64,000 bases of DNA from Nageia nagi (Eukaryota; Plantae; Pinophyta). Positions within the stretch are counted from its first letter, which is position 1. The number at the start of each line of letters is the position of its first letter. This document shows, in pieces, positions 33,001-59,541 of this stretch. A model generated the notes under the pieces. It was given only the letters and a program-made list of their open reading frames with translations, did no database searches and was not told the origin of the DNA. The translations under genes and the position numbers were made by a program. The stretch spans positions 154,690,001 through 154,754,000 of the forward strand of contig JBITNC010000001.1 of assembly GCA_050084985.1 (NCBI GenBank). Reading direction: 5' to 3'.

Positions 33001-36000
33001 CTTCTCCAATTCAAGGTGCATTCTTTACATTTTTAATATACCTAAGATAAAGTAGTTATATTTTATTGTTTTTAAAGAGTTGTATGAAAAGATTATTTTT
33101 CTAAAGACTTTTGTAATGAATTATTGATAAAGGACTTATACTAAGTGAAAGGATATATTGATTGATTTAATTGTTGTATTGCATATGGAGGTTATTATGA
33201 TGTCTTTTCATTTAAAAGGAAAGAAGTGGGATCTTAGTTTTTTTCTTAATTATTCCCTTTTATTTAATTTAATGGAAGTCCCAAGTACAATTTGAGTCTA
33301 GTTAATTAATTCATTATGACTAGTTCTTTCCCTCACTTGTTTTGATTTTAATACCTTCCTCCTTGAAAATTACTTTGGTTTTCCTATTTAAGCTTGAATA
33401 TAAGATAAGATTTCATAAAGATAATTATTATGATATAGCTATCTCCTAACACATGCTATGTCGTAAAGTTCTAGAGACCTCTTTTGTTTGGTAAGAGATA
33501 TTATTTTGTTTTTACTAGTGTGTTATATTCTTTTATTCCTAAAAACATAATATGTTGGAAAATGATTAGATAGACTCCAAAATCTTTCTATGAGCATAAT
33601 AAGTCTTATTTTCAATTCATACATGTGCTACCCAATTTTTATTGATTTTTGAAAATTCCTTCTTTAACAATTCTCCTACCAAAAGAGCATAGGTAAGTGA
33701 AAAAGTTGAATTCTTTGCCTTAAGCCATACATGTTGTTGAATTTCATTACCATCAAATGTGTTTTTCCCCAATGTACACTATTAGAAATTCTTGTAATGC
33801 CTTACATTGTGCAAAGTAGCACTCAAACTTAAAGCATAGGGAAACAAATGAGTATCTATTGTCTCCATGTTATGAACTAATGTTGCATAGTTAAATGAAA
33901 GCTTTTCTCAAAATACTAATAGAGGAATAGGTTACATGAATAAGGAGAGATTTGTATGCAATATCAATCCCAAACCATCCTTAATTTCCCATCATTGCTT
34001 GTCCAATACTTTAGAAATCTGTTCCAAGGGCATTTACTAGTTAAGAATGTAGAGATAGAATCAAATTTTGTAGGTAGGCAACTAAATACTTGATTTCAAT
34101 GAGAGTTTTTGCATTCACTATGGAAAATTCATGTATCCAATCAATGTGTTTTGAATTATACTATTTCATTGTTATATATTGAATGTTCATGACCCTTGAA
34201 TAGATGCTAGTATCACATTAATTTTAACTTGCTAGAAGATAAGCACTCACCATGTTTTCATGTTCAATGAAAGCATTAACAAGTTTTAGTTTACAATTTG
34301 AGAAGGGGTGACATAAATAAATTAGATGTCTTTGTGGGCTTAAGAAAAGGAATTAAATTTTAAAGAATCCTACTACAAGTGTATATATAAGTAAGACTGA
34401 ATATTGTATTTAGTAATTTATTATTGAGTAATAATTGTATAGTAATGAGGGATTCTCTTTTATAAAAATATTTTAGCATTGAAATCTAATTGCATTATTG
34501 AGTTTTGAAAGATACTTAGTAGAGTAATTCAAATACATTTCATCATTCTAAATTATATGAGAAACATGGTGAAAGATAATGTGACCAAGGAAAAAGGAGG
34601 TATTCCATAAAGGATCTAAAATCCTCCCGAGGTCTTAAATAAATGAATGCATTACATTATGGTCAATTAAAAAAAAGGATGTCTTAATTCACCTCCTTCC
34701 TAATACTCAATCCACTTACCAAGTACCAAGGGATGTTCAATGCTCATTACATGAAGAATAATGGAGATGCTCAATGCTCATTGCTTGAAGATCATTAGGT
34801 GCATCCCATGAAAAGCCAAAGAATGATTTACTCAATAGCATGTTATACTATATTTGTATTATGAAAGGATTATAAATTACCAAAGTCATTAAATTGTATT
34901 AATCTTATGATGTATTAATATTCTTGTAATAAGTTATGAAATTTTTGATTTTATAAGGATTATTTTGTACTTATCTTTTGTTAATATATTACAAAATGAA
35001 TGTAAGATAGATGATTTTACTTTCTATTTATGAATAACATTATGAGTATTACATGATTAATTCTTGGTGAAATAGAGTAAGGATTAATACTTGTTATATA
35101 ATAGTTGTAGATGAATTATGTTTGTAATCCTAACAAGTCCAAAATTATCCTATCAACTTAGAATCAAACCTAAACTAGAGTTAAGGTTCCAAATGACAAT
35201 TTGTGAGCATTTGGGATATCTTAGGGACCCTTGGAATCAAATTGGATATCAATGGTACCCCATGAGATAAATTGAATCATTTGAAATTCTTTTTGTATAG
35301 ATGCAAGAAATGAAATGAAGAACCTTTGCCAAGTAAACCTACCTTGGTAGATGATAAACAAAAGGAATATTTTTTGCATGAGGACCACATAGCACTACAT
35401 TACTTTTGTTGCAATAGTGGTGATATCCTTCCTCACAACTTATTACTTTATGTATTCAAGAGATATTTTAAAAAGTGGATCCATATACGTGATACAATGC
35501 GTATGGGATAAAATAAGAAAAATTGTGTCTTTCTACGTAAGTCATAACTAAGAATTTTGAGGTATTCCTTGTGGGTAAGGATGAATGGTGTTAAACCTTA
35601 GAACATGTCTTATACCCACTTCACTATTTGAAAATATTTGTATATGGTTAGTAGGACATATGTGGTTTTTTTGTCAACACATTTAAAAATATATTAGACT
35701 AAAAAACCACTTGAGGATATTGTTTAATATCCATGGCTCTTCAAGTTATGGGCATGGAGATGTCAAACCACATGGTGGGACTAACCAATAGTTATGGTCA
35801 TGTTAGTACTCATATTCCTCAATAGGTGAGTCAGGTGGGATAGCAATTGGAAAAACTACTATTACTAGGTGAGGGTAATTAGTAGTCATATCACTTACAG
35901 TTAGCAGATAGGGATATGATAATTGTTCCATAGGTGATGCTACCCACTAATAAGGAAGCTTGCCTAGGACAAGTTAACTGCTCCTATGAGATGGAGAGTT

Positions 36001-36726
36001 ATCATTAGGAGATGATAACTAACTTAGTGGAAGTGCAATCTTTCAAGTGTTATGGGCCCCGAGTAGAAAACCATTATGTTGTAATCAAAAAACCTATTAC
36101 ACACAAGACATGGAATAGAAATGGTGAGTTTACTTTTGAGGCATCTTTTCAATAGGGTGAGTGTTGAAAAGTGAACACTAGAAAACTTTATTAGGATTGG
36201 TTACCCTAGGTTCTTGGCCAATCTTGCCATGTGAGTGCTAAACTAGCTAGCAACATGTCAAACTCATGTGGGATCACCTTGTTCATTCCTAGTTCATTTG
36301 AGTGTTACAAAAAAAAAAGGTTAAAAATTAGGGCTTTGGTTGATGATAATTAGTGGATGCATTACAATATGCAAATGTTTAATGATATTTATGTTGAATT
36401 TTACAAGCAAAATACAAAAAAATTAAAAAAATAATGTTCAAGTTTTAAATTTGCATTTGAAGAAGGTGAATAACTATGATTAATGCTATTGAATTAAAAG
36501 AAGATATGATGAATTTTAATTAGAAGAACAAGAAATTAAGGGAAATTATTAAAAAGAATAGGTGGGAGCCCAAATATTATGGTACAAAAAAGTTTCAATT
36601 GATCCATCATTGTAATTGATAGATAATTTCAAAAGAGAAGAGATGAAACCATTGCAAAATCTCTCCTCCATAGTAGGTAATTTTATTCAATATAGAATTT
36701 TAAGTGATGATACTAAGTTTGAGTAC
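30009..36726 (+). pseudogene. hAT accessory gene copy B, split by the solo LTR
   Basis: MSSFAKVSFKNIICPNILIDLAKLDMYMDWVDNA; homologous to copy A on both sides of the LTR. Confidence 0.7.
32087..36366 (+). mobile_element. Ty3/gypsy solo LTR (4280 bp) with 5-bp TSD ATATG
   Basis: TGTCACGACCC...GGATGCATTACA, with ATATG at 32082-32086 and 36367-36371. Both ends match the LTR at 56110-59541. Confidence 0.93.
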
Positions 36727-38153
36727 AAGTTATCACCATGGAACTTGAAATTTGATGACTTTTAAGACTATTTAAATTTAGAAATTTGATTTCTATGTTC
36801 ATTCTCAAGATTTTGAATGCTTTAAAACTCATGCTTTGAATTTAATTCCTAGTAATTTGTATTGAATGGTAAAAAACAAAAATTTTGATTTCAATATTTT
36901 TAAACTTGTAGATGTTTGAATAAAAAAAGGGCTAGGAATTTGCCTTGGCTATTTTGCAAGTTAAATTTGAATGTTAAAAGAGAGTTTAATAATTTTTACT
37001 TGTATTCAACTGAATGGTAGCATCTTGCTACTAGATGATAACATCTTAAAATTGCATGCTTGGGTCATTTTTACATAGTTCAAACTATACAATTGATTAC
37101 TAAAAGTGTTCAACCTTACAATTGATAGTATTTTATGTCAATCTTATAGAATTTTTTTTTTTGAAATATTGCTAAGTGTATTAAAAGCTAGATAATTGAA
37201 ATAGTTGCCCATCATTTCCATTCTTATATATGTTAATTATGAATGATTGAAGAATATTATTTTTCTAAATATTTATCACTTCAACCTTGATGTTACTTAA
37301 ACTTCTTCATTCTACTAAAGACCTCCATGTGGCCATAGCCTTATTAATTGGAAAATTATACATAGAATAATTTGGAACATACAATCACAAATAAGCATCC
37401 AAGTTATTTCTAATATGTTATGTAGTTTCACCTTAATAAAAGAAATATCACTGAAGACTCTTTCATCTTATACTAAACTGAGTATGATTATCCAACATAA
37501 TTTAAGGGAAAAATTTAAGATTTCATATAAAAATAAATTCATATGAATGGTGAATTTATTTTTCTTGAGAAATAGCGAGTAGCAATTTTCCTATGAAGGT
37601 GCATGAAAGAAATGAAAAATATAATTTTGAGAAAAATACAAGGTGTTTTTTTTGTGAATTTATATATCATGCACTACTATTGGTTGAATGTGCCACCAAA
37701 TGGTAATAAGTTCCATTGGATGGTTACACTTGCCATCAAATAATTATATATAATCGGATGGTTACACTTACAAATGGATAATTGAATTTGCAACCATATG
37801 CTTACACTTACAACTGTATGGTTGCACTTATCATTATTTAGTGGCACTTATCACTATTCAATGGCAATTATCACCATCCAGTTGTAATTACCATCACCCT
37901 TACATTCTACATTATAACCAATTAGTTGCACCCTGCTACTGATTGATAGGAGTTCTAAGGTATAATGGTATTAATGCAATAATGTATCTATGAATAATTA
38001 TTTTTGAACTAATTTTGAAAGCATTCTTCTCTTAGAGCTTTTCTCTTCTATTAAGTGCTTCCTAGTTCCCTCCCATTATGTCTATTCTATTCATACCTTT
38101 AGCTAGTGCATCATTATTTGTGTGTTTCTAACTGTTCTATTGTAAATTCAATC

Positions 38154-40832
38154 ATGATTTCTTCTACTAAGGTTTCCTTCAAAACCATTTTATACCCTAA
38201 TAGAATCATTGATCTTGCAAAACTATATGCATATATGGATTTAGTGGATAAGGTAGGTCTTCGAGGATTTACTTACATGTTGCAGTTTGATGTTGACTCA
38301 AGGCTCCTAAACCTCCTATTATCAAGTTATGACAAGGAAAAAGGTATTTTTACTATCAAATTATCTTTTAAGATATTGGTGTATGGCACAGCGATATCAG
38401 ATGTGAAATGTCTAACTAGTCTTCTAAACAAAGAAGGGGATACTCTTACCATAACATCAAAGGCTATTTTCAAGAAAGATACGAAGAATTACCTTGAGTC
38501 CCATTACAATATATCATTTTATGACCCAATAAACTTATGATATTTCTATATTTGTGAATCATTTCAATTTAGTTTTTGAACTATTGTTAATCTATGATTT
38601 CTATCTAGCAATTTTTAAGATTATGGTTGAGTAGAGGTGTTATTTATAATAATTTCACCAATAATTACCTCAAGTCTATGATAAAGTTATTCTTTGCATG
38701 TGTTATTTTGCAAGGGTGATTAGGGAAGATTCTATAATGGGCTTACACATACATTGTGTTCACTAATAATACCAATGTTATCACCATAATAAAAAATTTA
38801 TTAGGGTTTTTCTTTGAAGTATTTTATGATTTAATTAATGAACAACCACTAACATGTTTGACAAAATGCATGAACCAAATATCTCTATCTTTATATCAAA
38901 TTTATGTATGTATTCCCTTCAGTATTTATTATTATGTCTAGGTTGTGTAATATTTTTTACCTAAACCAACAATTATATCATATACAAAGTTAAGCATATG
39001 CAAGTGCAAAGAAGAGGGGGCCAATATTCAAAGATCACCAAGATGAAGGTGGGATGGAATCTAACATGTATAGTAAGGAAACATAGCCCCTTAATATACT
39101 ATAAAAAAAAAATAAAGAGTTCAATTACATCAAGAATATCTCAATTTCCTAAAATTTTAGTTTACGGTAAAGAGGCTAAATGCAATAGATAAGGAATATG
39201 ATTGTTTTCTATTATAATGTCAAATTTCACTCTGTATTCTAAATACAGACATAGAAGATCTTTGTAACAAGAGTTTGATATAATAACCACATAGGAAACC
39301 ATACATGCAACAACTCACAACATCTCATAGTTAATCAATCAAGCACCCATATAATAAACTAGTTGTATTTTCATTCATGCAACTACTAGCACATCCTCCC
39401 ATGCAACCACATGGATACCCACCTAGGGAACCACTCATATACCTACACATGCCATCTAATAAGGCTAAGGTGATTATATACTCATGGGTGCACCTAAAAA
39501 GTAGCATGATTCACTCAATTTGTATAAGGGTGCACCCAAATAGGTGCACATTGCTTCAAGTTGGGTGCATCTTGCTACTAACTAGGTGCACCTTGCTACC
39601 AATAATATTTTTGAACTTATTTTTTAAATTCATATGGCTTACAATATACATTTTTTAATTGAACAATTTTGATAAGAAGGACTTACAGACATCACCATTA
39701 ATTCCATTACTAGGACAAGTTCAAAGGAGAGGAAAGCAAATTTTCATAATCACTGCTAAGGCTTGATCATTTTAGACATTGAACATTTCATGTTCATACT
39801 TTTCAATTCTAAATCTTGAGAATGTTTGAAGCACAAGTGGGGCCAAATTGCAATAAATTTATTTATATGAAGATTATTTTGGAATTGATAGCACTCCCAC
39901 TCCTTATGAACTCTTTCAACTATATGACATCATTAAGAGTATTTAGATGGGTACTTAGACTACTTCATAATAGATTTTTCCTAAATATTCTCAATTTCAA
40001 ATCCAAAATATTACGAAGAATGAGTAGAGAACTAATAATGAAGAATTTTTGATTGATCATTTGATTGAGAAAACTTCCCTCAAAAGTATACAAAATACAT
40101 TAATATTAGATATGGAAAGATTAATATAGTGGGAGTATAGGGCTAAGGTCATGGTGAATGAAATAAAGGCTAGATATGAAAACTACTCCCAATGTCACTA
40201 GTTGTATGTTCAAGTGCAAAATCAACCAACAAAAATTGATCTCTTTTGGCTTACGCTAAGGATGGTTTGATTTCTTTTCTAAATCAATACAATGATGTTA
40301 TTTTTAGTTATTATTTAGACAAAGTGGAGAATCTAAATAGAGAAGTTCATGCCTTTTTAACAAATGGACTCAAGATAAGAAGGCTATTGAAATTGCTATT
40401 GCAAAAAGAGATAAAGCAATAGTATTTTCCATTTTGTTTACACTAGTGAAAAATATGACTAATAATATTTTAGATATGAAAAGGTTTAATGATATTTATA
40501 TTGAATTTTATAGGAAAAATATGAAAATTTAAAAAATAATTTTCAATTTTTAATTTTCCATTTGAAGAAGGTGAAAGACATGTGATCAATGCTATTGAAT
40601 GAAAGAAGATATGGTGAAGTTGAATTTAAAGAATAACACATTAAGGTAAATTATTGAAGAGCATGGGTGGGACCCTAAAATAATATGGCACAAAAAAGTT
40701 GTAGTTGATCCATCATCAACCTCAGTGGGAAACACCATGAGAGAAGAGAGAAAAATATTACAAAATTTCTCCTCTACGATGGACAATTTGATTCAATCTA
40801 AAATTTAGAGTGAGGACACTAAGGTTAAGTAG
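38154..40832 (+). pseudogene. hAT accessory gene copy C (best-preserved first exon)
   Basis: ORF 38106..38540 from MISSTKVSFKTILYPNRIIDLAKLYAYMDLVDKVGLRGFTYMLQFDVDSRLLNLLLSSYDKEKGIF; ORFs 38756, 38998 and 39816 are further fragments. Confidence 0.72.
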
Positions 40833-41939
40833 AAGTTACCACCATGGAATTTAGAAGTTGGTTACATTTAAGACTATTTAAATTTATTAATTTGCTTTCT
40901 CTATTAAATATCAAGACTTTGAATGTTTTAAAAATGATGCTTTGAATTTAATTGCTAGTAATTTGCATTGAATGGTAAAAAAGTTAAAATTTTAATTTCA
41001 ACATTTTTAAAATTTTGCATGTTTGAATTTTAAAAAAGGTTTGGAATATTCCATGGCTATTATACAAATTGCATTTGAATGTTAAATGAGAGTTTTATAA
41101 TTTTCACTTTGATGTAATCAAAAGGTAGTATCCTTCAACTGGATGATAGAATCCTATAGCTAGATGCCAATATCTTGCAACCAAATGGTAGCATCTTGCT
41201 ACTAGATGGTAGCATCCTACAACTAGATGGTGACATCTTGAAACTACATGCTTGGTTCATTGTTACACAATTCAAACTATACAATTGATTACTAATTTAA
41301 TCTTGTAATTAATAGTATTTTTGTGTCAATCTTATACAATTTTTTAATTTGAAGAATTTCTGTGTATTAAAAGGCAAATAACATAAATAATTGCCCAACA
41401 TTTCCATCCTCAAATATGTTAATTATATTTTTTTAAAGAACATTATCTATTTGAATATATATAAGGATCATTTTAGCCATAAATATTAGCTAATAAGCAA
41501 ATTTTTGGAATTGTAAAATTGAAAAAAGGTGAATTTTTATATTTAGAACAATACCCAATTCACCAAAATGTTTATTAATTTTTTTTGGGGCCTGATTTGT
41601 CAAGTCAAAAATAAATTTTAAATTAAATTTTTATTAATTCACTAATATTTTGAAATAATAACTAGCTAACTTCACCTTGAAATTACAAATTATTATTTTT
41701 ATTTTATTAAATTGCCCCATATATATACCTTAATTAAAAAAATAAATTTGATATATCCATTTTTATTTTCTTCTAGATGAATCTGCTTTGTGCAAGCATG
41801 TTAACAAAGCCTACAAAATCTAAAGAGTTACAAAACTATGATAATTGGTATGATCATATTTTGAATTTTATTATGTTTCATCATTTGAATTTCATATCTA
41901 CCTCCAAATGATAGTAGATGTATCTAAACAATCCATGGT

Positions 41940-42310
41940 GCTTCCGAATGATGGCATATGCTTCCACATAGTGGCATGTGCTTTCATATGGTAGCAAGCT
42001 ACCAAATGATTGCAAGTTATTACCAAACAATAGCAAGTTACTACCATATGGTTGCAGGGTGCTACCAGAGGGTTACAAGTTGCTACTAGATGATTGTAGG
42101 TTGCTACCTTTTGATAGCAATATGCTACCTTAGGTTATCATTCAGTAGTAACCTACAACCATTTAGTAGCATCCTGTAATCATTTGGTAGAAAGTTGTAG
42201 TAACTATCTAGTAAAGGTTGCTATCATGTGATCGCATTTGGTTCTAAACTACACCAAGTGGTAGTAGAAAATGCAACCATGCAGTAGCAACCTTTACCAG
42301 ATAGTAGCTG
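41940..42310. repeat. ~21-bp palindromic motif array (GGTAGCAAGTTGCTACC core)
   Basis: Related arrays at 47500-47660, 49310-49530, 28815-28930, 41110-41240, 52455-52580 and 55800-56109. A GGTTGCACTTGCAACC variant occurs at 25420-25570, 29545-29770 and 37670-37930. Confidence 0.8.
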
Positions 42311-42387
42311 ATTATTCAACATGTTTATATTTTTATCTATTTTCTATTGTATTAAATTTTTTAATTTAACTATTAATTACAAATTCT

Positions 42388-45165
42388 ATGCAATCTAAGA
42401 ATACTAGTAAAGCGATATGAAAAAAAGATATATTATCTTATTTTGCTAATGAACATTCACAAAATGAAGGAACTCATCAAGCATCTTCAATTGATATAGG
42501 TACTTTTCTTAGTTATTATTTTTAATGTAAGACTTCAAATTCTAAATTTATTAATTTCAATATATGGAAATACATTGTGATTATAATGATATACCACCTA
42601 ATAATAATTATGTCCAACTAATTTTGGTCTAATTAATAATAATGATAATTTTTAATTTCAATATGCAAAAAACCCTAATAATGATGTACCACTTGATTTT
42701 GCTCCAATTGATGTACAACCACTTTTAGTTGAGTACCCTACATATGGACCACCTTTACATTATGATAATCCTCCTAACCTATCTACAAATAAAAGTTCAC
42801 AAAAATGTATGGATAAATCTATAGACAAATCTATAAATAGATCTACGAAAAATGATAATGAAAATTAGAAAAGAAAATGTAGTGCAAAATGAATAATTGG
42901 AAGAGTATTTTAGGTCAATTGGGAAGCAAAATATATGTTCATTGAACCAATTGATCCTTGTAATGGAAATGATCCAACAAAGTGCAAATGTAAGATATGT
43001 TTTTGGGAACAAAAAAAGAACATCAAATGCAACTAAAAATAGATACAATACAAAAACTTTGTGGTAACTTATATTAAAACAAAATAGATAAGAATGGATA
43101 GACAATTAAGTGTTACAGGGATAAAATTGAAGATGAGTGTAATCACTTATGATATAAAGTAGAATATGAAAGGTACATGAAAGAAAAATGAGATCTATAA
43201 GAAAACAATGGAACACTAGAAACGCATTTTGGAAAAATTACTGATACAAAAAGGTAAGCAAAATTTACTCAATTTTGTACTATATTTCATATTCTTAAAT
43301 AGGGTAGGCCTATTGTAGATTTTATAAATTTTAAAATTTTATATCAAAGAGTTGAATTATAGAATGTACCGTAAAAATATTGGTCAAATACAAGTGCTTG
43401 GGAAATGGTAAAATGTTTGTCAATGGTTGAGATTGAAATTTTAAAAGACAAAGTTAAAAAATCATAACTTATTTCACTATCACTTGATGAAGTTACAATA
43501 GTGGATAATACTTCATGGGTTTGTGTGCATGTATACACTTTTCAAAATAATTGTAGGACATCACATCCATTGAATGTTCATAAGTTTGATGAAAATTGTA
43601 ATGTACAAAATCTTTACAAGTTAGTTATTTCTAACTTAAAAATATTTTGTTGGAATGGATGATTATGAAATTGCTACCAAATTGATATGTGTTGGAGCAG
43701 ATGGTGTATCAGTAATGCAAGGTAATAGAAATGGTATTTATGTTAGATTATAGAATTTAGTAGGTCCTTATATGATTCTCATTCATTATATGGTACATAG
43801 AATGAACCTTGCATATAGAATTGTTAGCACTTTTATAAGCGTATCAAAAGTGGAAGAGCTTATTCATGATTTGCATGCATATATCATAAGAAGCCCAAAA
43901 AGATATAAAGAGGTCAAAAATATCTCTATTGGAATAACTAATGGAAATAAACTTTTAAAAGATAATGATACAATATGGATTTCATTGTATGAACCAACAA
44001 AAAAGATTTTTTTATTGAATATCCATCTTTTACTAGTTATATGTATGAACACCATAATGCAATTGATAAAGCAAAAGATTTACTATTCCATTTAACAACT
44101 TTTTAAATATTAATAACTTTATGCAAAATTCTTCCAATGTTAGATGAAATCAATACTTTAGTGAAACATGCTCAAGAAAGATGTATATACATATCTAATT
44201 TCATGTCTTTGAGGAAATAGGTATCTTTATCTTTGGATATGCTTTATACATGTGTAGACAATTTTAAAGATCCTTTATTTCAAAGATGGGAAATTTTGAC
44301 AAATGTTAAACTTCCAAATATTTTTTTGAAATTTAACATCAATAATCATCTTTTTATAGAGGTGAAAGAAAAGTTGATACCATTACATGTTCAAAATATG
44401 AGAAGGGATTTGGTTGGAGTAGAATATGAAGATGAACTTATAAATCATCTTCTTTTTAATAATTATTTTTTTGAAACACATGTTAATTTAAAATATATTT
44501 ATACAAATTTAACTAATGAAATCTATGAACAATTTCAAAGAGATGATTTACTTAAATCTATGATAATTGTGAATCCAAAATTTTGGAATACAGATAATGG
44601 TGAATAGTTAATTCATGATTTGTTTCATAAATAAATGGTAATTCTTGGAACACATTTTCATAAAAAAGTAGAAATAAATGCACAAAATATTAATGGTATT
44701 TTGAGTAAAGAATTGTTGATAACACAATCCAACCATTTTGGACTTGCTATGATTAAACAATACTCTCTATTATCAGAACCAATAGAAAATGGTGCCATTA
44801 AATGTCTTTGGGTGAAACTTTATCCAAGTTCTTATCTTCAAGGTAATATTAGTGAGTATTTTAAATTATATGAATTGTGTCAAACAATGATTATGGATTC
44901 CATTGAAGATGAAAAGGTATTCAACACTTTATCTTTTATTAAATCCAAGCTACAAAATAAATTGGACAAAAACTTGGATACATGTAATAGATTATATGTT
45001 TCCTCTTATGATATGGATTCTTTTCCAATAGAAAGGGAATGGATCTTTTATTTTCTTCTACACAAAGGAGAGGTGTAAACAATTGTGAAGAGAATGCTCC
45101 AATAGAAAAGTACACACCAACAACAAAACAAATCATAATAAAACAAGTTGTCGAAGGGTTTTAAT
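42388..45165 (+). pseudogene. hAT transposase, ZNF862/Tip100-like, degenerate
   Basis: MQSKNTSKAI*KKDILSYF; ISLSLDEVTIVDNTSW; CVGADGVSVMQG; IHYMVHRMNLA; RSPKR; NDTIWIS; dimerisation-like ELCQTMIMDSIEDEKVFNTLSFIKSKLQNKL. Probable intron from ~42500. Confidence 0.9.
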
Positions 45166-45409
45166 TTGAAATACCTAAATAAAACATTTCGAATACTTGT
45201 AATTTTGGATCTTAGATTCTAAAATTTGCTTTACTAATCAAATTCATTTCATGTTATTGTTGACTAATATTTTTAATTAGTATATTTCTTTTTTCTATGT
45301 ATGTTATTGTTTACTTATGAATTCAATTAGTATATTTGTATTTTTTGTCTAAAATATTTCTAACTTGTTATTATTTCCAAATCAACATAGATGTGAATAA
45401 CTATATAAA

Positions 45410-45990
45410 TTTTAACAAATATAACATTCAACCATAACATTTCAAAGAATAAAATATAACATAACCATAATATTTTAAATATAAAGTAAACATAACATTT
45501 CAAATAAACATAACCATAACATTAAAAAAAAAACCTAAAATATTTCAAATAAGCATAACCATAACATTCAACTAGAAAATTCAATTACAATATAAATTTT
45601 AAATATAAGATAACCATCACATAAATTTCAAAGATAATCAAACATAACCATAAAAACTATCAATGTAATCTAAACCAAACTAGTCTTAACAATAACATAA
45701 CCATATAACATTTCAAATAAGTATAACCAACATTCAACTATGAAATTGAATAACAACATAAATTTGAAATATAAGATAACCATATCAATAATTTCAAAGA
45801 TAGTATAACCATCAAAGTATTTTAAATCAAACATAACATAAAATAACCATAAAAGTATTCTAAATCAAACATAACCATAAAAATTATCAATGTAGTCTCA
45901 ACCAAAGTAGTCTTAATAATAACCATAGAAACCATCAAAATAGTACAATAGAAACCATCAAAGTAGTCCAATACAAACCATAAAAGTACT
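45410..45990. repeat. Degenerate (ACATAACCATA)-type simple repeats between the convergent genes
   Basis: Many ATAACCATAA / AACATTTCAAA copies. Confidence 0.75.
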
Positions 45991-46037
45991 AAAGAGTGTC
46001 AAATTATACTAATATCCCTCCCTTATTCTCTTCCTCC

Positions 46038-49023
46038 CTAAGCCTCTGGCTCATCCGATGAAAGATCAATAATATCAGTAGCTTTAGTAAGATTGCATAA
46101 TATATTCTTATCTAAGGTAGATACATTGTTTGATGAAAGCAAACTTGGATCCATAGCAATTTTCTCTTTCCATAAGATATATAGATTGAGTTGATGCTCA
46201 TTAATTATTATTATATAAGAATTATTCACTTTCTTCAAGTAGGCCATTTCATCCTTCATTTGAATGGCTATTGTGATACTTTTTTTTACAGTTTTCAAAT
46301 GAATTTTAAACATTTGAATATATTTTAACATTTTATCATACCTAGCCTACAATCAAATAACAATATAAAAATCATAAACATGAATATAAATATATTTTCA
46401 AAACATAAACATAAAATATGTAAACATTGAAATTAAAAAAGTTAATTGTTACCTTATCTTGTTCCTTTTGCACCTTCGTAATCTTTACCAAATTTTAATC
46501 TCTAGACCAAAGATCATAGTAAACTTGGGCCTCTACATTTAAATTTTCTAAATGGTTACACATAATACCCATTATCTTATCATTGTATTTGCATTGAACA
46601 TTGATTGAACTCACTTGTGCTTGATTATTCAAACTTTCTATTTGAATAGGTTCATTCTTAATTAATTTGTACAAAGAATCACATTGAAAATGATTATGAT
46701 AATGAGTATTAATTTACTTTATCAATGATTTTTCACATACTTCCCATGCATTTAAATTATTGATGTTATCCAAGAAAACATGATTTATCTATGCCATGTA
46801 TCATCTAAAATAAGTGCATTCAATGGAAAGTAGGTGACTTGATCATATATTTTACCAACAGTGTCCTACATGTTTTATGAAGGTGATGTAGTACTTGTAT
46901 ATTATAGATGAGAATCTTGAACTTGAATCTAAATGATATCATGGGTGCTCAATTGTGAATTTGAACAAATATCCATCCCTAAAAAAATCCACATCTAAAG
47001 GGATGTTTTGTAAACCTAAAATACCAACATAATGTATATCATCCAATTGTAGATTAGGAAAAGAAAACATTCTTGATAAGTTCACCATTTGGTGGCTCAT
47101 GGAAGGAGCATCCTATTGTAAATTTAGGCATTTTTCTACTCTTCTTATGGATAATGGATGTGCAATAGGAGGAGAAGGAAGAGGCATGGGTGACAGTGAC
47201 TTTCATTTTGGAGAACTAGATCTATCACTTGTATCAATTTTTTTTTTATTATGAAATATGAATTCATTTCTATTGGATAACAAGTTTAAATAAAACAAAA
47301 TCCAAAACTAGATACCTAAAGGAGGTGTAGTGTATGTAGTTTGAAATTGTTGATTATATGAATCTAACATATCTTGATCTCAACTATGATGATTGGAATA
47401 GAAATTGAATGAAAATTTTAAAAGATTTAGCATATATTTATAGACTAAAAGTCAATGTTAGAAATATATAAATGAGGCATTAAATTTCTTATCCATACAC
47501 TAGCAAAATGCTACCATATGAAAGCAAGATGCAATCAGATGGTTGCAAGATGCTATCTTACAATCGTGTAGTAGTATGTTGCTACTAGAATGCTACTATA
47601 CGATAGTAGAATGATACTATATCATTCCATCCTTCTACCATATGGTTGCATCCTCCTACAATACTTAGCAGAGTTGAACAAAAAAGATTAAAATAACAAA
47701 GTTACTATATTACCTCCTTATGTTTGTTTTTTTAGCAAAAGGAATTTCTTCTACAACCTCAAATTTGAAGGCATATCAAGAAAGGTTGTTCTATTAATAA
47801 CAACATTTCCTTCTCCTACAACTATAATAATATGTTAAAAATTTAAGATAATATATATAATTTAATTAAAAAATATCAATTAAAATGTAAAATACCTATA
47901 TTCATTAATCATTCACCAACAATAGGAGGTGATACATTCCTTGTCCTCCTTATAGAGGATCATCTGAATAATAATGGACTTGAAGTGTCAATAGACTCAT
48001 TGTCACCATTGGCTTCTAGATGAGCTCCTCTTAGTGATGCTTCCCTTTTCTTTGATGTTTGTTTAGAAAGATGTTGAAATAATATAATTTGGTTAATATT
48101 ATTAAAATTTTAAACATTCAAACATGTCAAGTTAAAATAAAAAATAAATTTGATTTTTAAATACCTAAATTTCCTCAATTGATAAAGTTAGAGCTATCAT
48201 TTGTGAATCTAATGCCATTAAAGTTGACATTGTATTTATAACATTATAAAAATTTCATAATAAAGAGTGAAAATGTAATTTGTACATAATATAAAACTAC
48301 TATCATTATGAATGGAAAAAGACATATCATATTTTATTCTATCTGAAATATATAAACACCAGTCAAATTTTTAACCACTAAATGAATGAAGGATGTAAAC
48401 TATAGACCATAATGGAATGTTGAATGTTCTACCTTGAAAAATAATTCTTGAAAGAAAAAATTAATAGATTGCTTTGAAGTAGTCACGAGGGAAGTTTTTA
48501 TAAACTATCCCTCTTTTGCTTCGATATTCTACACAAAATGATGAAAGTGATTAATCAATTAACTTTTAGTTATACATAAATAGAAAAAATTAATTAAAAT
48601 GAAATTTGAAAAACAACTTACCAATGTTGTTAATTTGAATGTGGTAAGTTTCCTCTAAATAAGTTTTAACTTCTCAAGATAATAGAGCTATAGAGGAAAC
48701 TTGGCATACATCATCACCATGATGTGGTAAACTAGACAAATGACTAATGTCTATAGCTGAAACTCCAAAGGAAAAGCTTCTTGATTCTGTAACCACATAA
48801 AACCTTGATTGCTTGATATCATAAATGGATATAAGATAGTCTAGTAAATTTTAATCTATTTCAAATTGGGGCATAAAAATGAGCCCTCTAAACCTTGTTT
48901 GGTCCACCCATTCTAAGTAACATTATGGGATAAAGTAAGATAAAATACTAGAAGATAAAATACTAGGACATGATATATTCCTATAGGAAAATTGATGGTT
49001 AGTGGATGATGAAGGGTGGACAT
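46038..49023 (-). pseudogene. Spliced accessory gene of the inner hAT, convergent with the transposase
   Basis: YLEWVDQTRFRGLIFMPQFE..LLDYLISIYD; KFDWCLYISDRI; last exon ..INEHQLNLYILWKEKIAMDPSL..DLSSDEPEA*. Minus-strand donors at 48621, 48164, ~47895, ~47714, ~47315 and ~46452; acceptors at 48529 and ~46348. Confidence 0.75.
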
Positions 49024-49723
49024 GGTTCTAAAAAAGTAAAAATTAATGTTGAGGTAAAATATTATAGGAAAAAGCAACAAAAATGACATCTTTTATAAGT
49101 CATAACTATCTAAAACTACCACTAAAGTATTACTTAATGAAAAACAAGAGCACATGGAACCTTGATTTGGCATGAAAAGAGAGCTCTATATAGGTGGGGA
49201 AAATGATAGAATGAATAAAATAAGTCATCTAATACACATATATAGTTAATTCATACATGGTACCATGATTTTAGGGTTGACATGTGGGACATTTTGCAAC
49301 ATTGTATGGGCTTGCTACCAATGGGATCTTTCTACAGTTGTAGACTCCAATCATGTGACAAGAAGCTACTACCATGTGGTAGTAGCTTACTATCGTGTGA
49401 TATCAAACAAGCTGCTATCATGTGGTAGCAAATTGCTACCATGTGATACTATACTACTATCATGTATTAGCAAGCTAGCTACTATTTTGCAATAGAAAGA
49501 TACTACCATGTGGTAGCACAAACTTATCTACTATAGCTTGAAGGCATGTTGTTACCCCTTTCATCTTATTCATCAAAAAAATCTATATTTTTTTCAGTAA
49601 GTTCAAATTCATCTTCATGTTTTTGAATTTTTTTTTAAATCCCCTTTATTATGAATCTAATTTGCCTTTAATTTTCCATGTTAGTTTTTATAAAAGGATC
49701 TTAAAATGATCCCTAAATATATG

Positions 49724-52330
49724 TCACCTTACCCTCGATGTTACCTAAACCTCTTTTTCTTGCTAAAGACCTCCTTGTGGCCATAACCTCATCAATTAGA
49801 AAATTATTCATAGAATAATGTGAAACATACAATCATAAATAAGCATCCAAGTTCTTTTACAACTTATGACATTGTTTTGATTTAATAAAAGAAAGAGCAT
49901 TGAAGACTCTTTCATCTTTTACTAAACTAAGTATGATTGTCTGATATAATTCATACAATCAAAAGTATTCACTAATATTATCTTGTAACATGGTATTTGG
50001 GTGTATTCCATAAATGATTAATAGTGCCTATTTTCAATGGCTATAGTAAAAATGGATATTGATCACCTGTTGTAATTGTGAAATGAGTAGACTATTTCAC
50101 TAGAAAATCCTTTTAGAGAATGCCATCTAGTTTAGTTCTGTTAATGTCAATAGTTTGGTAAAAATATTTGATCAAAATTTTCATGTATTTATGAAATAAA
50201 TAAGCTATTTATCTTTTATCATTGATTGGATTCCAAAAATGTGAGTTTACAATAGCCATTGCCTCAATTAGATCATCTCTTAGGTACTAATCTTGAATTT
50301 TTGATGATAATTTTTGAGCAACTTTTATTGGTTTAATCATTGTATCTAATATTAGTCGATCAAAAACTATTCTACTATAGAAACTTTCTCATTCTCATAT
50401 ATAACTAAATCAAGTATGAAATCATAAACATACAAAGGTATATCAACAATATCTACATGGATACAAAGATGGTCATATATGATGAATTTTAAGTAATTTT
50501 TAGGATTCTTAATATTTTTTAATATTCACCATTTTGCAAAATGAGTTTCATTAAATCTATCCTCTAAAACATAAAACATATATAAGGATTGACATAATTT
50601 TTTTCTCAAATATATAAAATCAAATACATATATTGATCTTTGTTGTGCATTTTTCACTAGTAAATAAATCTCTTATAATATTGATATTAGTCCATAAAAA
50701 CTCAACAAAGTTTCTAAATCTATTAAATGTTCTAGTAGATCTTTTGCTTTGTTAACTTGTAGTCTTTTTTTAAACATAAAACCAGTGAAACCCATCTATT
50801 TTCAACATATGTTAAGAATTTTTTTTCATTTGCTATGCATTCAGTAAAGTCTTGAAATTCTTTGTACATCATTTAGGACTATTTGATATATAAGTATACA
50901 ACTCTTGAATAAGATCTTCAACATTTGCAATGTGATCATCAGTGCTAAGAATTTTATTTGCTAGATTCATTATGTGATACATACAATGTATAGTAATCAT
51001 ATAAGGAGTAGTTATTATTTTTATTCTAACACAAAGATATTTTTGACTTCCTAGCATTATGGTTGCACCATCAGTGCCTACACATATTAGCTTTGATGCA
51101 ATCAAAAAATCATTCATTTCTATAATATTTTTTAAATTAGAAATGATTAATTTGTATAAGTTTTTTGTATTACAATTTTCTTTTATTTTATATATAGAAA
51201 GCAAATATCTTTATCTTGTATGACTATGAAATGTGTAAACATGCATACAAACCCATGATGTGTTATCTACTTTTGTAACCTCATCAATAGAAATTGAAAT
51301 AAATTTTACTTTTTAACATTTTGTTTTAAATCTTCCTTCTTAATTATTTCTAAATAATTTGCAATTTCACAAGTGCTTGATTATGGAATATTTTTAACAT
51401 CAATTTACCAATATAGAATTATATAGTATGAATAATTTACCATCAGTTTTCCATTTTTCAATATATGTAGCATAGGCAAAAATTTCACTCTTTTGGCTAT
51501 CCACTGAGTGTCCATTAATTTTTCAATTTGGGTAGAAAAAGTTTCATGTTTGTCATGAATTCATTCTTGTTCTTTGGAAAAACTATTATACTCAATTTTA
51601 TACTATAAATGATTACACTCCTTAATTTTTATCCTCATTTTCTTCACACCATTTCCATCTTTATCTTTTTTGTGTAGTAAACTTTTTTGTAATGTTTATC
51701 AATGGTGTCTATCTTTAATTGCATTTGGTGCTCACTTTAAAGTTTCCAAGTACATATTTTGCACCTACATTCAATTGGATCACTACCATACTCTTTCATT
51801 TTGGGTTCAATGAAAGGATATTTTGCATCCCAATCAATGTGAAAACTTCTTCCTAATGTCCATATACTTATTTTTTGATGTTTTGTTTCTCAACTATACT
51901 CTTCATTGAGATCAATAACTTTAAAATTATGTAAAGTATCAGTTATTATTAGTGCTGAATTTTATGATGTATAGACCTTTGGACCTGAAGCATCAAGTTA
52001 ATCATTGGAATCTATAATTTCTTCCTCACCATGAACATACTCTCATGGTGGAATTTTCAAAGCATCATCAATGCCATCTTCTTTATATGCCACATTATGT
52101 TTTATAAGGATGGAAAATATTTGGGGATTTTATAATTTGCAAGTGGAACAAAAATACAATTAATGAATAAAAATGGAAATACTAAATACAAAACATTCAC
52201 TGTTCAACCTAAACATAGGATGGTGTATCTACAATTTTCATATCCGATGATAATTGAAGATTGTTTTATTTCATTTAGATGAAATATGATAATATATTTT
52301 TATTTGATTTTTTGTAAATATGATTTTTAA
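49724..52330 (-). pseudogene. hAT transposase of the outer element, degenerate; its C-terminus is split by the inner hAT
   Basis: ORF 50869..51204: LICVGTDGATIMLG..PYMITIHCMYHIMNLA..NSPK. Also ISISIDEVTKVDNTSWVCMHV (~51250-51300) and a dimerisation region at 49730-49960. Confidence 0.9.
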
Positions 52331-53290
52331 ATTTATTTTATTCTATTAAAGTTATTAAGAATTTAATTTTTTTATGCACCTTCAAAATGATAATCTTACA
52401 TTAAATCATAATAGTTTCATCAAAGTTCAAATTTAATAGATTCCAGAGGTTGAAACATGCAACTGTTCAGTTGCATGATGCAATCAAATGATTATAGTAT
52501 GTAAAAAAATGGTTGTAATATGCCTTAAAATGGTTGTAATATGAAACCAAAAGATTACAATATGCCACCAAATGCATCCAACGGTTTATATATAACCAAT
52601 ATCAAAATGATAAAAGTTATTGAGTGTATCACTATCACATCGATGTTTGGTGATTTCATTTTAGGTTACATATAAGGGTATAAATATTTGATAATTATTT
52701 CTATAATTTTAGTCATCCTATCAATGAATTAATATTATAATCTATTCACAGCATATAATTATTTAGCATTACAACCTCAATAATTTTAAAAATTTGTAAT
52801 TTTTGGGTGACTAAGTGGCAGCTTGTAGTTTAAGAATTCATTAAAAATATGTTTTGATAATTTTAGGATTCACTTATAAGAGAATATTCATGGTTAAATT
52901 TTTCAATAATTTTTAATTTACAAATTTGTCATGAACTATGTTTGAATTTATGGCTTCTCTAGTCCATATTTTACTTGGTGGGAAAATAGGTGAATAGTAA
53001 AAACCATAAATGGACCTCAATAGCTTCCTTCATAGTAGTAACATGTGATTAGTTAGGAGGGAATAATGACTTGAGTAATTAATAGGGGATATTAGGTTAG
53101 TTAATCTTGCTATTTCTTCCATCTTCGACTAAGTCCTTTTTTATCTTTCTTTTAGAAGCTCTCTTGGAAATTCAATCTCAAATAAAATAATATATTACCA
53201 ATTTGTGTAATAATATATTGAGGGTTTTATTTTGGAAAAAATATAAATATATGTATTTTGATCAAGCTTCAACCTGAAATCATCACTTCC

Positions 53291-55512: not shown

Positions 55513-56109
55513 TAGGGTTTATTTTACCCAGGAATATTCGTTAATAAGCAAATTTTAAATTTTACTAAAATTGAAATTGGTGAATGTTTTGAGTTACACA
55601 AATAACCTTATTGCTAATTTTTTTATTTTTAATTTTTATCCAGACTAGGCCAATAAGTCAAATCAATATTTTAAATTAATTTTTTATTTTTCATCGATAT
55701 TTGGAAATAATAAATAGCCAACTTCACCTTGAAATTATAAATTTCTATGTATATTTCAACTAAGCTGCATAATATAAATACCTTAATCTAAATTTGATAT
55801 CTCATGGTAGTAATCTGCTACTTCCCAATAGCATCTTGTTATCTCTTGATAGCATTCTACCTCCTAGTAGGAATCTAATACCACCTAGTAGCATACTATT
55901 GCCTCTCGATAGCAGATTCCTATCACCTGATAGTAGATTGCTACTACCTAGTAGCAACCACCTAGTAGCAAACTACTACCACTTGGTATCAGATTACTAC
56001 CATCTAGTAGAATACTTCTACCACTTGGTATTAGACTACTACCACCTAGTAGTAGTCACCTAATAACAAATTGCTACCACTCGATATCAAGTTTCTACCA
56101 CTTGGTAAC
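55513..56109 (+). mobile_element. Left end of a third hAT related to the inner element, interrupted by the gypsy LTR
   Basis: TAGGGTTTATTTTA..TAATAAGCAAATTTT..AACTTCACCTTGAAATTA is colinear with 41462-41760 and is followed by the 21-bp motif array. Confidence 0.82.
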
Positions 56110-59100
56110 TATCACGACCCACCTCAAGACACTGTTTGACCTTAAGTACCATCAAGGATTTGACTGGATTATATATGAATAATGCTATAGTAATGATAAT
56201 TTTGATAAGGAAATATGTACCATTTATGAAAATTTGATGCTATCTTCAATATGGTTTTACACAAGTCACCTTAAGATGGAGAAGAGATCCAAAGACCCTA
56301 GGGACCAAAGGTGAATTGGATGGGAATGAGAGGGTATGAGGAGGAAATGATTGGCAATGATTTGCTAAAAAATCCTATGACCATCATAAATCATGTAGTT
56401 GCATGTAGAATAATCACTATGATTTTCAATTTCTTGATGAAAATATGTTTTCAAAAATGTGTGGATTAATCTTACTTTGCAAGATAAGGTGACTATCGTA
56501 GGTAAAGGTGTGTTTCCCTTGTTTGGTATTTTTGAAATTCAAAATTGAAATAGAGGTAAAAAGGAATATACCTTCTCCAAATTTGAAAATTTATATAAGA
56601 TAATATAAATAAATTAAATGGGTTAAAAGTTGAATATGAGAACCCATACTATTGCCACATGGGTCTAATAGTAAAATAGTTTCAGAAAAAGACTAAGGTC
56701 TCCTTGTGGTGTTACAAGATATTTAATGGATAGAAAAATAATGAATTAATGACCCTACTTAGTTTTGTTTTATTGTGCTACATATGGATAAAATTTAGCA
56801 CTAATTATTTATTTTATAAATATGGCTCCAAGGTATTTAATACCATTTCAATCATCAACAACTTTAAGCAAACTTACCCCAAAAACTATTAAAATGAGAG
56901 GAGACATTCATTTGGACACACTTGAACCTCTTTAGTTATAAATAGGAGGGGTGGAACATTAGAAAAACACCTACTCATCTATCTATCTTTTATTATTTCA
57001 TTTTTATTATTCTCAAGTTTGGGTGTAGAGTTATGTAAAGAAAAGAAGTCTTTTTTCCCTCTCCAAGCTCAAGTGCATTCTAATACATTTCTAAAATATC
57101 TAGTTAAAAGAGTCATATATTCAAAATATATATTTTTTAATTGCAATAAAGTGTTGTTGGTAAAAATAATTGTACCATTGGAAGATACATATTATTATTT
57201 TTGTCAGATATAATGCATATGGTGGTTGGAGCCTTATCTTGTCATTTAAAAGAGCAATGGGAAGGTATCTTATTATTTTAAAGTTTTATCAAAAATATCA
57301 AGTAAAAATGTGTATTATAGTATAATAAATTAATTTTATTATGTACATTTCATGTAAACTTATTCCTATTAAAATAATTCAATCTTACTTTCAATCTATG
57401 TATCCTCCCACATTTTCTATATGGTAATTCATAGCTACAATATTTGAAGTCAAACCATTTCTACTGCTCTTTGGTAGTATTCCAACCTTTATATTCCTAT
57501 AATTAATTAATAAATTTGTTTTAAAATCCATAGCCTTCCCTTTCTACAAACATTTAATATCCATTTGTGTACTCTTTCTCATTTTACTTACTCAAGGGCA
57601 CATGATCCATACATAATAAGGCAATATCGTTCACTAATTCTTGTCACTTTTTCAAGCTTCCTTTGTGGTGTTCTATGTCAAAATAATACTAAAAAATGGT
57701 TGTAGAGTATGGATTTAATTATATAAATGTGTAAAAATCTCTAGTATCCTAGTAGAAACCAAAATTTGCTTATCTTGCCACAATTACTATCCATAAAATT
57801 TATTAACATCTTGATTGCTTTCAAATAATTCCTGGGTATGGTGTATTCCTACACATTTTACCTACATGGATATCTAGGTATTCATGACCACATATTTATA
57901 AAAATAATAATATTGACTACTCTTTAATGAATACTAATACCTTCTTCTAAATATTTCATGATAGAACATGTTGAAAAGAATGTTAGTTAGCCCTATCCAT
58001 TATAGTTGAATCACCTATGCTCACATCCATGGAACTCTATCTACATCATCAAACAATCCCTAGGCCTTGAAGTTGAATATAATCATGACATAAACCTTTT
58101 TGTTTACATTCCTATGGTACAAAACTCCATATCTTCCCCATGATCTTGGATTAGGGCATATATAGTTAAAATTTATAGAAATTGGTTTCACTTTAATCCA
58201 AAAACTTATGTTATTTGCAAACTTTGCTTTTGATCTCAATGAAAATCCCCATTTAATTAGCATGATATCCTTTCAATAATTTAGGTTTTATTTCAACATA
58301 ACTTAAAAAATGCAAGGAAATCATCAATGTGATGAGTAAAAGATATGGTGAATCAAGGAAGGACTTTGGTATTTCATAGATAGGACTTACATTTAATTTA
58401 ATTTCCCTTTTACTTTTAACACCTACTCCACTTTGATTAGTACCTTTTGGTTTTAAAATCTTATTGAGTATTTTTATGATTAAATTCAATCTTAATATGT
58501 ATGATGGATTAATGAATAATAAATAAGAAATATGAATATTATACTAGAAGGGATATAAAGGGTGACTATAAATTAATAAGATGTAGTTGACAATAAATTT
58601 ATTATTGCTATAGATGAAAAACTATATTTGTTTGAGATAGTAAGAAATTAATATTAAATTTGGGAAGGTTGAAACCTAAAACTATCAGATAATAGTAATA
58701 TCCATGGTTAGTTTATGAAAGAAAATTTATTGTGATCAAGTAAGAGAGGTGATAAAAATCCTCCTGAGGTCCATATAGGTGAATGCGAATAGGATTACAT
58801 GTAATGAAGAATGCATTTGCATAATGGTCAAGTTTAAAATGGGGTTATCCTAATCCTTCTCCCTCTTAGTACTCTATCCATACACCAAAAGTCTACAAAG
58901 ATGCTCATTGAACAAAGATCCATGGATATGTTCAATGCTTGATGCTTATTATTGATAGATCAAAGGATTTATATTAGCCTTATGATGTATTAATGTCCTT
59001 TGTAATAAGTTTATGATGGCTTGTAATTATCTTAGATGTTGATAAATGAATTTATGAAGTGTATTAAATCTTCTTGTAATTAATTATTGACTTAGAAATG

Positions 59101-59541
59101 ATCAATAAGGAATGTTTTATATTTATAGATTATTAGTGTAATGAATGGTAAATGAAAAGTAGGTGATTTTGTGTTTGGAAAATGCTAACTTAGTGGAAGT
59201 GTAATCTTTCAGGTGGTATGGGCCTCAAGTAGAAAACCACTACATTATGACCAGAAAGCCTATTGCACATGGGACATGGAATAGAAATTATGAGGTTACT
59301 TTTAAGGTGTCTTCTCAATAGGATGAATGTTGAGAAGTGAACACCAAAAATTTTTATTAGGGTTGGTTACATCAAATTTCTTTACCAATCTTTCCATGTG
59401 AGTGTTGAACTAACAAGAAACATTATTAAACTCATTTGGGTTTACTTGGTTCATTCCTATAATATTGAGTGCTAAACTAAATAAAAAGAATTAACTATAA
59501 ACTCTAGGGTTATGGTTGATAAGAATAGTGGATGCATTACA
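56110..59541 (+). repeat. 5' LTR (3432 bp)
   Basis: TATCACGACCC...GGATGCATTACA; homologous to the solo LTR at 32087-36366; TATA-like TATAAATA at ~56937. Confidence 0.9.

Follow-up and report, generated by a model that had tools for sequence, protein, structure and literature searches.

To our knowledge, members of the hAT superfamily are textbook examples of transposons with a single gene. Mutator, CACTA and PIF/Harbinger elements are known to carry accessory genes, and short terminal inverted repeats (TIRs) of the YAGGG/YAGAG type are typical of hAT. The present study deals with a stretch of 64,000 nucleotides (nt) from Nageia nagi (contig JBITNC010000001.1, positions 154,690,001 to 154,754,000; hereafter the window), in which an element of 8,254 bp, called A (41462-49715), is nested in one copy of B, a sister family that has diverged from it. 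The described hATs (Ac, Tam3, hobo, Hermes) share with A the 8-bp target duplication, the short YAGGG/YAGAG TIRs, the subterminal arrays of short repeats and, putatively, the RNase-H-like transposase core, and the structural model of a database relative of this core is closest to Hermes. Unlike these hATs, A and B carry a second, convergent gene, predicted to be spliced and called gene2 below, and the Pfam hAT models miss their decayed transposase pieces. Our data indicate that A and B probably represent a two-gene hAT lineage, in which gene2 was an element-borne accessory factor under past selection. No description of a two-gene hAT was found in the literature searched, a limited search which is not proof of absence.

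Among the described systems, MuDR (mudrA/mudrB), En/Spm (TnpA/TnpD) and PIF/Harbinger (ORF1 plus transposase) are, like A and B, two-protein cut-and-paste elements. In MuDR, as in A, in the three copies of family B (B1-B3) and in an independent element on the contig L002, two convergent genes lie between the TIRs and are conserved across members; the likeness is one of layout only. TnpA of En/Spm binds subterminal repeats. These elements differ from A and B in belonging to other superfamilies, and in Pfam scans gene2 showed no relation to MURB, to TnpA or to the Myb-like protein of Harbinger. VANDAL21/Hiun, with its VANA transposase and VANC, resembles A and B in being a TIR element with a fast-evolving extra protein besides the transposase and with short-motif arrays in the non-coding DNA of the element; in the ESM Atlas, the nearest neighbours of gene2 exon 1 include DUF1985 clusters. 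VANC of the VANDAL Mutator-like elements (MULEs), which contains DUF1985 and DUF287, counters silencing in a sequence-specific manner by targeting tandem motifs (PMC5735166). A and B differ from VANDAL21/Hiun in superfamily and plant lineage, in the lack of a Pfam DUF1985 or DUF287 match for gene2 and in a motif core which is common to two families instead of differing.

The PMD proteins (MAIN/MAIL1, Gypsy PMD-A and the PMD-C-MULE fusions) are, like gene2, associated with plant transposable elements, and the nearest predicted structure to gene2 exon 1 belongs to MAIN-LIKE 1/PMD (TM-score 0.57). PMD is found both in Gypsy elements and as a fusion with MULE transposases (PMC5418596; PMC12973397). 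The PMD-C of MAIL1 has been reported to be structurally similar to the DUF1985 of VANC (bioRxiv 10.1101/2024.09.27.615353), and PMDs encoded by transposable elements have been proposed as anti-silencers (bioRxiv 10.1101/2024.09.27.615353; PMC5418596). gene2 is unlike them in that it gives no significant sequence or profile match, is a separate gene and not a transposase fusion, resides in a hAT and not in a MULE or Gypsy element, and has extra coiled-coil-like and acidic regions. It should be noted here that hAT is not mentioned in PMC5418596, PMC12973397, PMC5735166 or bioRxiv 10.1101/2024.09.27.615353.

Element A is delimited by a left TIR at 41462-41475 on the + strand (TAAGGATCATTTTA) and a right TIR at 49702-49715 on the - strand (reverse complement TAGGGATCATTTTA). 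The TIRs are 14 bp long and match at 13 of 14 positions. Outside them lie the two copies of an 8-bp target duplication (aatatata at 41454-41461 and aatatatg at 49716-49723, alike at 7 of 8 positions), seen in the sequence and in the comparison with empty sites; the left boundary reads tttgaatata followed by TAAGGATCATTTTAGCC, and the right one TAAAATGATCCCTA followed by aatatatg. The borders could be fixed because two paralogous uninterrupted copies of the target (empty sites) are present in the window. A is nested in B3, the third copy of the diverged family B. Without A and one copy of the duplication, B3 is gapless and colinear with B1 (29060-29240) and with the tail of B2 (37190-37370); therefore A, gene2 included, was inserted as one 8,254-bp piece. 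An earlier note on this DNA had described A as an element bounded by TIRs and a target duplication and holding a transposase and a convergent multi-exon gene, and this description is borne out. Six-frame self-comparison showed two sets of coding remnants in A, one on the + strand and one on the - strand. Both genes are broken by many stops, the other copies in the window and the one on L002 are broken too, and the whole window is AT-rich (GC 23-32%) and made of decayed repeats. A is a dead, once-autonomous DNA transposon of the hAT superfamily, inserted in a copy of its sister family B; it is a multi-gene TIR transposon, and all the local copies are dead.

The transposase remnant of A (about 42880-45075, + strand) has a zinc-finger-like N-terminus, a putative RNase-H-like catalytic core, a C-terminal block and many stops. 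The core motifs are DE.T, DGAS and H..H.(M/L)NLA, read as ..SLSLDEVT.. and ..VGADGVSVMQG.., and the C-terminal block contains ..EDE(K/R)VFN.LSFIKSKLQNKL.. and ..IEDEKVFNTLSFIKSKLQNKL..; by eye, this block resembles the hAT dimerisation motif. The transposase region is 82% identical at the nucleotide level to L002 2367-5487. A 170-amino-acid (aa) database relative of the core, P0016, has an AlphaFold model with a predicted local distance difference test score (pLDDT) of 53. When this model, with its pLDDT of only 53, was submitted to Foldseek, ranks 1-5 were all Hermes hAT transposase (E 5e-3 to 2e-2, probability 0.80-1.0). A was accepted as a hAT on the strength of three features, this Hermes-like model, the 8-bp duplication and the YAGGG termini. 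The termini are TAAGGATCATTTTA and TAGGGATCATTTTA in A and CAGGGATCATTTTA and TAGGGATCATTTTA in L002, and the duplication is present around A, with single-copy paralogous empty sites, and, in perfect form, around the L002 element. Other searches added little: a PDB sequence search with P0016 gave nothing useful, a profile of the transposase C-terminus had no match among PDB sequences, the hAT dimerisation domain PF05699 gave no Pfam match at E<=1 with C-terminal pieces of 144-147 aa from L002 and A, and a word-indexed protein search with the catalytic piece returned fragments of the same family only. P0016 itself carries the precomputed Pfam accession PF27073.1, which may be a recently defined family covering this type of transposase.

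gene2 of A runs on the - strand from about 49024 to 46041, has many stops, and starts about 690 bp from the right end of the element. The layout is the mirror image of that in family B, where gene2 of each copy lies on the + strand, starts about 650 bp from the left end and converges on the transposase. Homology between gene2 of A and B was detected by tblastn in one frame only (E 1e-14 to 1e-3), and between the A-family and the B-family it forms six blocks of 33-51% aa identity in that single frame. Overall, gene2 of A and B is about 36% identical at the aa level and the transposase 52%, and the non-coding DNA of A and B is unalignable in the window. Three protein motifs which the earlier note had quoted as common to the two families were found in A and B, respectively, as CYLEWVDQTRFRGLIFMPQF and AYMDLVDKVGLRGFTYMLQF, KFDWCLYISDRI and RFDFCSYISKRI, and ILWKEKIAMDPSL and ILWHKKVAFDPSL. 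When gene2 of the A-family (L002) was compared with that of the B-family, identity at codon positions 1, 2 and 3 was about 50-78, 53-80 and 24-47%, and the identity expected from composition at the third position is about 30%. The choice of alignment at the protein level favours positions 1 and 2, and the tblastn E-values (down to 3e-14) are the safer statistic. Neutral evolution between the subfamilies had been named as grounds for abandoning the idea of a family component; what was found is that positions 1 and 2 are conserved and position 3 is near random. This pattern indicates past purifying selection on the putative gene2 protein, with silent sites saturated.

Relatives of gene2 were sought by scoring a profile of exon 1 exhaustively against 1.84 billion representative proteins. 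It was found that 12 proteins match (E 1e-43 to 6e-4), all of them 59-156 aa long; they are exon-sized open reading frames (ORFs) from Logan, ENA and JGI assemblies together with KAH9291728.1 of Taxus chinensis, a hypothetical protein and the only named relative. No longer or named host protein related to exon 1, and hence no match to a host gene, was present among the 1.84 billion, and word-indexed protein searches with exon 2 and with the exon-1 profile (E<=10) gave fragments of the same family only. L004 (GC 67%) was set aside as a chance match of 25 residues. The proposal that gene2 is a component of the family and not a one-off capture has thus held: gene2 lies at the corresponding place, convergent with the transposase, in A, B1-B3 and the independent L002 element; its protein is conserved while the non-coding DNA around it cannot be aligned; and no relative among host genes was found in the 1.84 billion proteins. 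On these comparisons gene2 is a part of the element, inherited with it and kept by selection on the protein while the families diverged. A hAT lineage which keeps a second gene across a deep family divergence means that hATs, too, can evolve multi-component systems.

The independent element was reached from one of the 12 gene2 relatives. L001-L003 are public metagenome contigs of one locus (GC 30%). The A-family element on L002 is 73-82% identical to A, and its left end, which starts CAGGGATCATTTTA, is 79% identical to that of A. The TIRs of L002, at 1676 and 9240, face the same direction in the contig, and the 8-mers flanking them are ATTAAAAT at one and its reverse complement at the other. 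A segment of 4.5 kb is bounded by a perfect inverted repeat of 107 nt (7581-7687 and 12213-12319). When this segment was flipped in silico, one element of about 9.0 kb resulted, with the TIRs CAGGGATCATTTTA and TAGGGATCATTTTA, a perfect 8-bp duplication ATTAAAAT and the layout of A. The perfect duplication appears only after the flip, and the unflipped configuration is the same in the three metagenome assemblies L001-L003; the orientation of the segment is either an assembly artefact or a real inversion. Exon 1 of gene2 in L002 is an intact ORF of 136 codons initiated by ATG, and exon 2 is interrupted once, by a TAA at the position of a CAA in A.

gene2 is predicted to be spliced from five or more exons and to encode some 600 residues. 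Exons 1-2 would provide an N-terminal domain of about 250 residues, to which are added a basic linker resembling a nuclear localisation signal, a coiled-coil-like region and an acidic tail. In A, all on the - strand, exon 1 (48622-49024) holds the conserved N-terminal domain, has lost its start codon and contains 2 internal stops; it is 62.6% identical at the aa level to the intact 136-codon ORF at L002 10001-10408. Intron 1 (48529-48621; 93 nt, phase 1, G/GTAAGT...TGTAG/) was placed by splice consensus and frame. Exon 2 (48165-48528) reads ..RGIVYKNF.., ..KFDWCLYISDRI.. and ..LDSQMIALTL.., with stops and a frameshift. The exon 3 region (47963-48109, approximate splice sites) encodes a basic and then acidic linker, ..SKKREASLRGAHLEANGDNES.., which in L002 reads SKPKKREAALRG.., and a middle conserved block (46978-47163) reads ..FPNLQLDDIHYVGILGLQNIPLDVDF... 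A coiled-coil-like exon of about 170 residues (46399-46856) is homologous to L002 6591-7106 and to B 27767-28075 and 40046-40240, and the last exon (46041-46346; ..ILWKEKIAMDPSLL..) contains ILW..K.A.DPSL and the acidic tail ..DLSSDEPEA. A first-intron position common to both families had also been proposed, and this stands in part. The intron 1 gap is 93 nt, in phase 1, at homologous places in A and L002 (10389-10481, where the donor is mutated to AT), with stops in every copy, and the donor of B follows the homologous ..D(E/N)P plus 1 nt, B1 keeping A/GTGAAC; the acceptor of B is blurred by indels and could not be fixed. At the junction of intron 2 and exon 3 the frames do not close in L002 with a visible GT..AG pair.

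The non-coding DNA of both families contains arrays of a unit of about 21 bp with the imperfectly palindromic core GCWACCA-N5-TTGCAA. In A they lie at 41939-42310 (left subterminal arrays), 47510-47651 (an internal cluster within a gene2 intron) and 49408-49465 (right subterminal array of 21-bp units), and the program TRF found arrays of 21-bp period near both ends of A and in B. GCTACCANNNNNTTGCAA, allowing up to 2 mismatches, has 27 matches in the window against 1.12 expected. All but one of the 27 fall in A, in B1-B3 or in an A-like fragment at 55.9-56.1 kb. These matches are either inside the hAT copies of the two families or no more than about 0.7 kb from the copy ends, and the internal ones include matches in the gene2 intron and, in B, between the genes. 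The core is regarded as a conserved, putative protein-binding site because it is common to A and B while their other non-coding DNA is unalignable. A different kind of tandem repeat, with 25-38-bp units of the AACCATAACATTT type, lies between the convergent 3' ends at 45394-45990; the same kind is present in L002 at 5356-6065, and it fills the gap between the gene 3' ends in both A-family copies.

In A, in B and in at least one further element, that of L002, two convergent genes, the transposase and gene2, lie between the ends of the transposon. gene2 may have encoded an accessory factor whose target was the DNA or chromatin of the element itself. It would most likely have worked as a dimeric, nuclear DNA-binding protein which recognises the palindromic 21-bp arrays of both families, and such a protein might help to assemble the ends or might keep the element transcribed by anti-silencing, as VANC does for VANDAL. 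Either role, anti-silencing or a cofactor of transposition, is conjectural. gene2 and the GCWACCA-N5-TTGCAA arrays nevertheless make a concrete pair of protein and cis-motif which can be taken to the bench.

Several points weigh against this reading of gene2 and of its element. Pfam gave no match for the transposase pieces of A, nor for the better-preserved pieces of L002. Every copy seen is broken, and the splicing of gene2 is predicted from consensus signals. Between the two A-family copies the exons are 77% and the introns 79-82% identical, which gives no support for selection; this parity fits neutral decay after insertion. At identical residues, silent third positions agree between L002 and B in 53 of 129 cases (41%) for gene2 and in 84 of 147 (57%) for the transposase (Fisher p=0.008), and between A and B in 43 of 94 (46%) and 83 of 146 (57%), respectively (Fisher p=0.11). 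The higher silent divergence of gene2 is a hint that gene2 and the transposase may have non-identical histories, and module exchange between element families may be one possible cause of the difference. The motif arrays could equally be binding sites of the transposase. As to the fold, a Pfam hmmscan of 13 gene2 family members at E<=10 matched no family, neither PMD (PF10536) nor DUF1985 (PF09331). The ESM Atlas lists PMD clusters (feature scores 0.87-0.88) and DUF1985 clusters (0.86-0.88) among the closest neighbours of both exons queried, a decayed one of B and the intact one of L002, but these scores are below the tool's 0.9 reliability line and the Atlas model has a pLDDT of 0.54.

The label PMD/DUF1985-like, which the earlier note had given to gene2, is therefore not established: Pfam, PDB sequence and PDB fold searches were blank, profile searches gave no PMD or DUF1985 protein, and what is left are weak Atlas neighbours. 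Pfam scans of single exons had no match; the exon-1 profile had none among PDB sequences; no PMD- or DUF1985-annotated protein appeared in any gene2 profile or word-indexed search; a regular-expression search found no PMD-like genes within the window; and a fold search against the PDB with the exon-1 model (pLDDT 60) gave no neighbour. By eye, the layout of a segment '..F.FG....DI..L.GLP..GD.V' and a later segment '..FDWC.fIS..' is similar to the PMD pattern. The closest Atlas structure neighbour of exon 1 is a MAIN-LIKE 1/PMD 99% cluster (TM-score 0.57 by query, 120 of 136 residues aligned), and the next is a DUF1985 cluster (TM-score 0.50 over 127 residues). From these models, the chances that the N-terminal domain is a very remote relative of the PMD/DUF1985 fold appear evenly balanced.

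Two more specific accounts of the accessory gene depend on this question. gene2 may be unrelated to PMD/DUF1985, a new fold working as a TnpA- or MURB-like architectural cofactor which binds the subterminal palindromes and aids end pairing or integration, and we give this account a modest chance of being right. It agrees with the lack of a link to PMD/DUF1985 at the level of sequence or solved structure, with a common palindromic motif in subterminal arrays, as expected of transposition cis-elements, and with the coiled-coil-like region, which suggests dimers; for comparison, new Mu insertions require MURB, which also binds MURA (PMC12973397). It sits less easily with the Atlas, where both queries list PMD and DUF1985 clusters among the nearest and the best structural neighbour, the MAIN-LIKE 1 cluster, aligns over most of exon 1, and with the occurrence of the motif inside the elements and not at the ends only. 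The other account is the independent acquisition, by a hAT lineage of gymnosperms, of a VANC-like module, a fast-evolving protein of PMD/DUF1985 fold which binds the 21-bp arrays of its element and counters silencing; on the present evidence this is unlikely. If it were true, MULE, Gypsy and hAT elements would all have recruited one fold for counter-defence, and the origin of the PMD/DUF1985 superfamily would lie before the angiosperms. Even a PMD/DUF1985-like N-terminal domain by itself would extend the link between this fold and counter-silencing to a third superfamily of transposable elements and to gymnosperms, and would bear on the origin of the host PMD genes (MAIN/MAIL).

The preferred reading, an accessory gene inherited with the element, has also to be weighed against capture from the host. 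An ancestral hAT could have picked up a host gene, or a fragment of one, in a single transduplication event, and gene2 would then be a passenger without a role. DNA transposons do capture host genes, and capture of PMD-C by a MULE is documented (PMC5418596); moreover, gene2 has evolved faster than the transposase (36% against 52% aa identity between the families), and its synonymous sites look older. However, no host parent was found: the exhaustive search returned 12 fragments, all of them short, and nothing longer from the annotated plant proteomes. The conservation of codon positions 1 and 2 with position 3 near random and the kept position and phase of intron 1 together argue for long-term selection while gene2 rode in the element. 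The divergence of A and B has erased all other non-coding similarity, and a functionless passenger would not have outlasted it; we consider capture very unlikely. That gene2 belongs to a different nested mobile element, or is an unrelated neighbour gene brought in by a coincidence of nesting, is scarcely credible even in a window full of nested and tandem repeats (A in B3, unrelated DNA in B2), given that its order, orientation and distance from the end (about 650-700 bp) recur in A, in B without alignable non-coding DNA and in L002, that no separate TIR or duplication surrounds it, and that A with gene2 arrived as one piece according to the empty sites.

The copies of family B need a description of their own. 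The relative of A had been placed at 25237-52961, with a homologous gene in the same convergent arrangement; the homologous gene2 and the arrangement are present, but the region consists of three head-to-tail B copies with A nested in the third. To call it one element bounded by TIRs and a target duplication was wrong, as the TIR match at the right end, 52961, extends over 7 bp only (TAGAGAA in common with the left ends) and a search there for a right TIR with a target duplication gave nothing convincing. The four copies of which that note spoke are A, B1, B2 and B3. B1 (25237-29380, + strand) has a left end, gene2 at about 25800-28490 on the + strand and the last 65 or so transposase codons at 29186-29380 on the - strand, and is truncated. 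B2 (29381-37502, + strand), also truncated, consists of the parts 29381-32086 and 36425-37502, split by unrelated DNA (32087-36424). The left part of B3 (37503-41461, + strand) carries gene2 on the + strand, with exon 1 open for 145 codons (38103-38537) and the last gene2 block at 40650-40805, and a 21-bp array at 41119-41250; its right part (49716-52961, - strand, right end 52961 uncertain) holds a transposase remnant from 51889 to 49788. The left ends at 25237, 29381 and 37503 are TAGAGAAAATTTTAAAAC, TAGGGAAAAGTTTAAGAT and TAAGGGAAAAATTTAAGA, respectively. B1 and B2 are truncated at the identical point of the transposase, about 65 codons from the C-terminus (29380 and 37502), and the next left end adjoins directly; B3 alone continues past the insertion of A into the transposase. 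The B1/B2 junction is itself duplicated, 29186-29619 matching 37310-37740. This suggests that B1-B3 are a tandem array derived from a nested or truncated unit which was later amplified.

A few other repeats were observed in the window. The DNA which splits B2 (32087-36424) is an unrelated repeat, parts of which recur at 56320-56883 and 59184-59366; in translated comparison these parts are 50-64% identical to the DNA at 56.3-56.9 kb and 59.2-59.4 kb, on both strands. At 55513-56090 there is an A-like left terminus, TAGGGTTTATTTTACCC, which is 71% identical to 41462-41757 and is followed by a GCWACCA-N5-TTGCAA cluster (55938-56090). No transposase or gene2 matches lie downstream of it, and this fragment may be a non-autonomous or truncated relative of A. 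Finally, a TIR-like string at 61382, CAAGGATCATTTGAACC, resembles the terminus of A.

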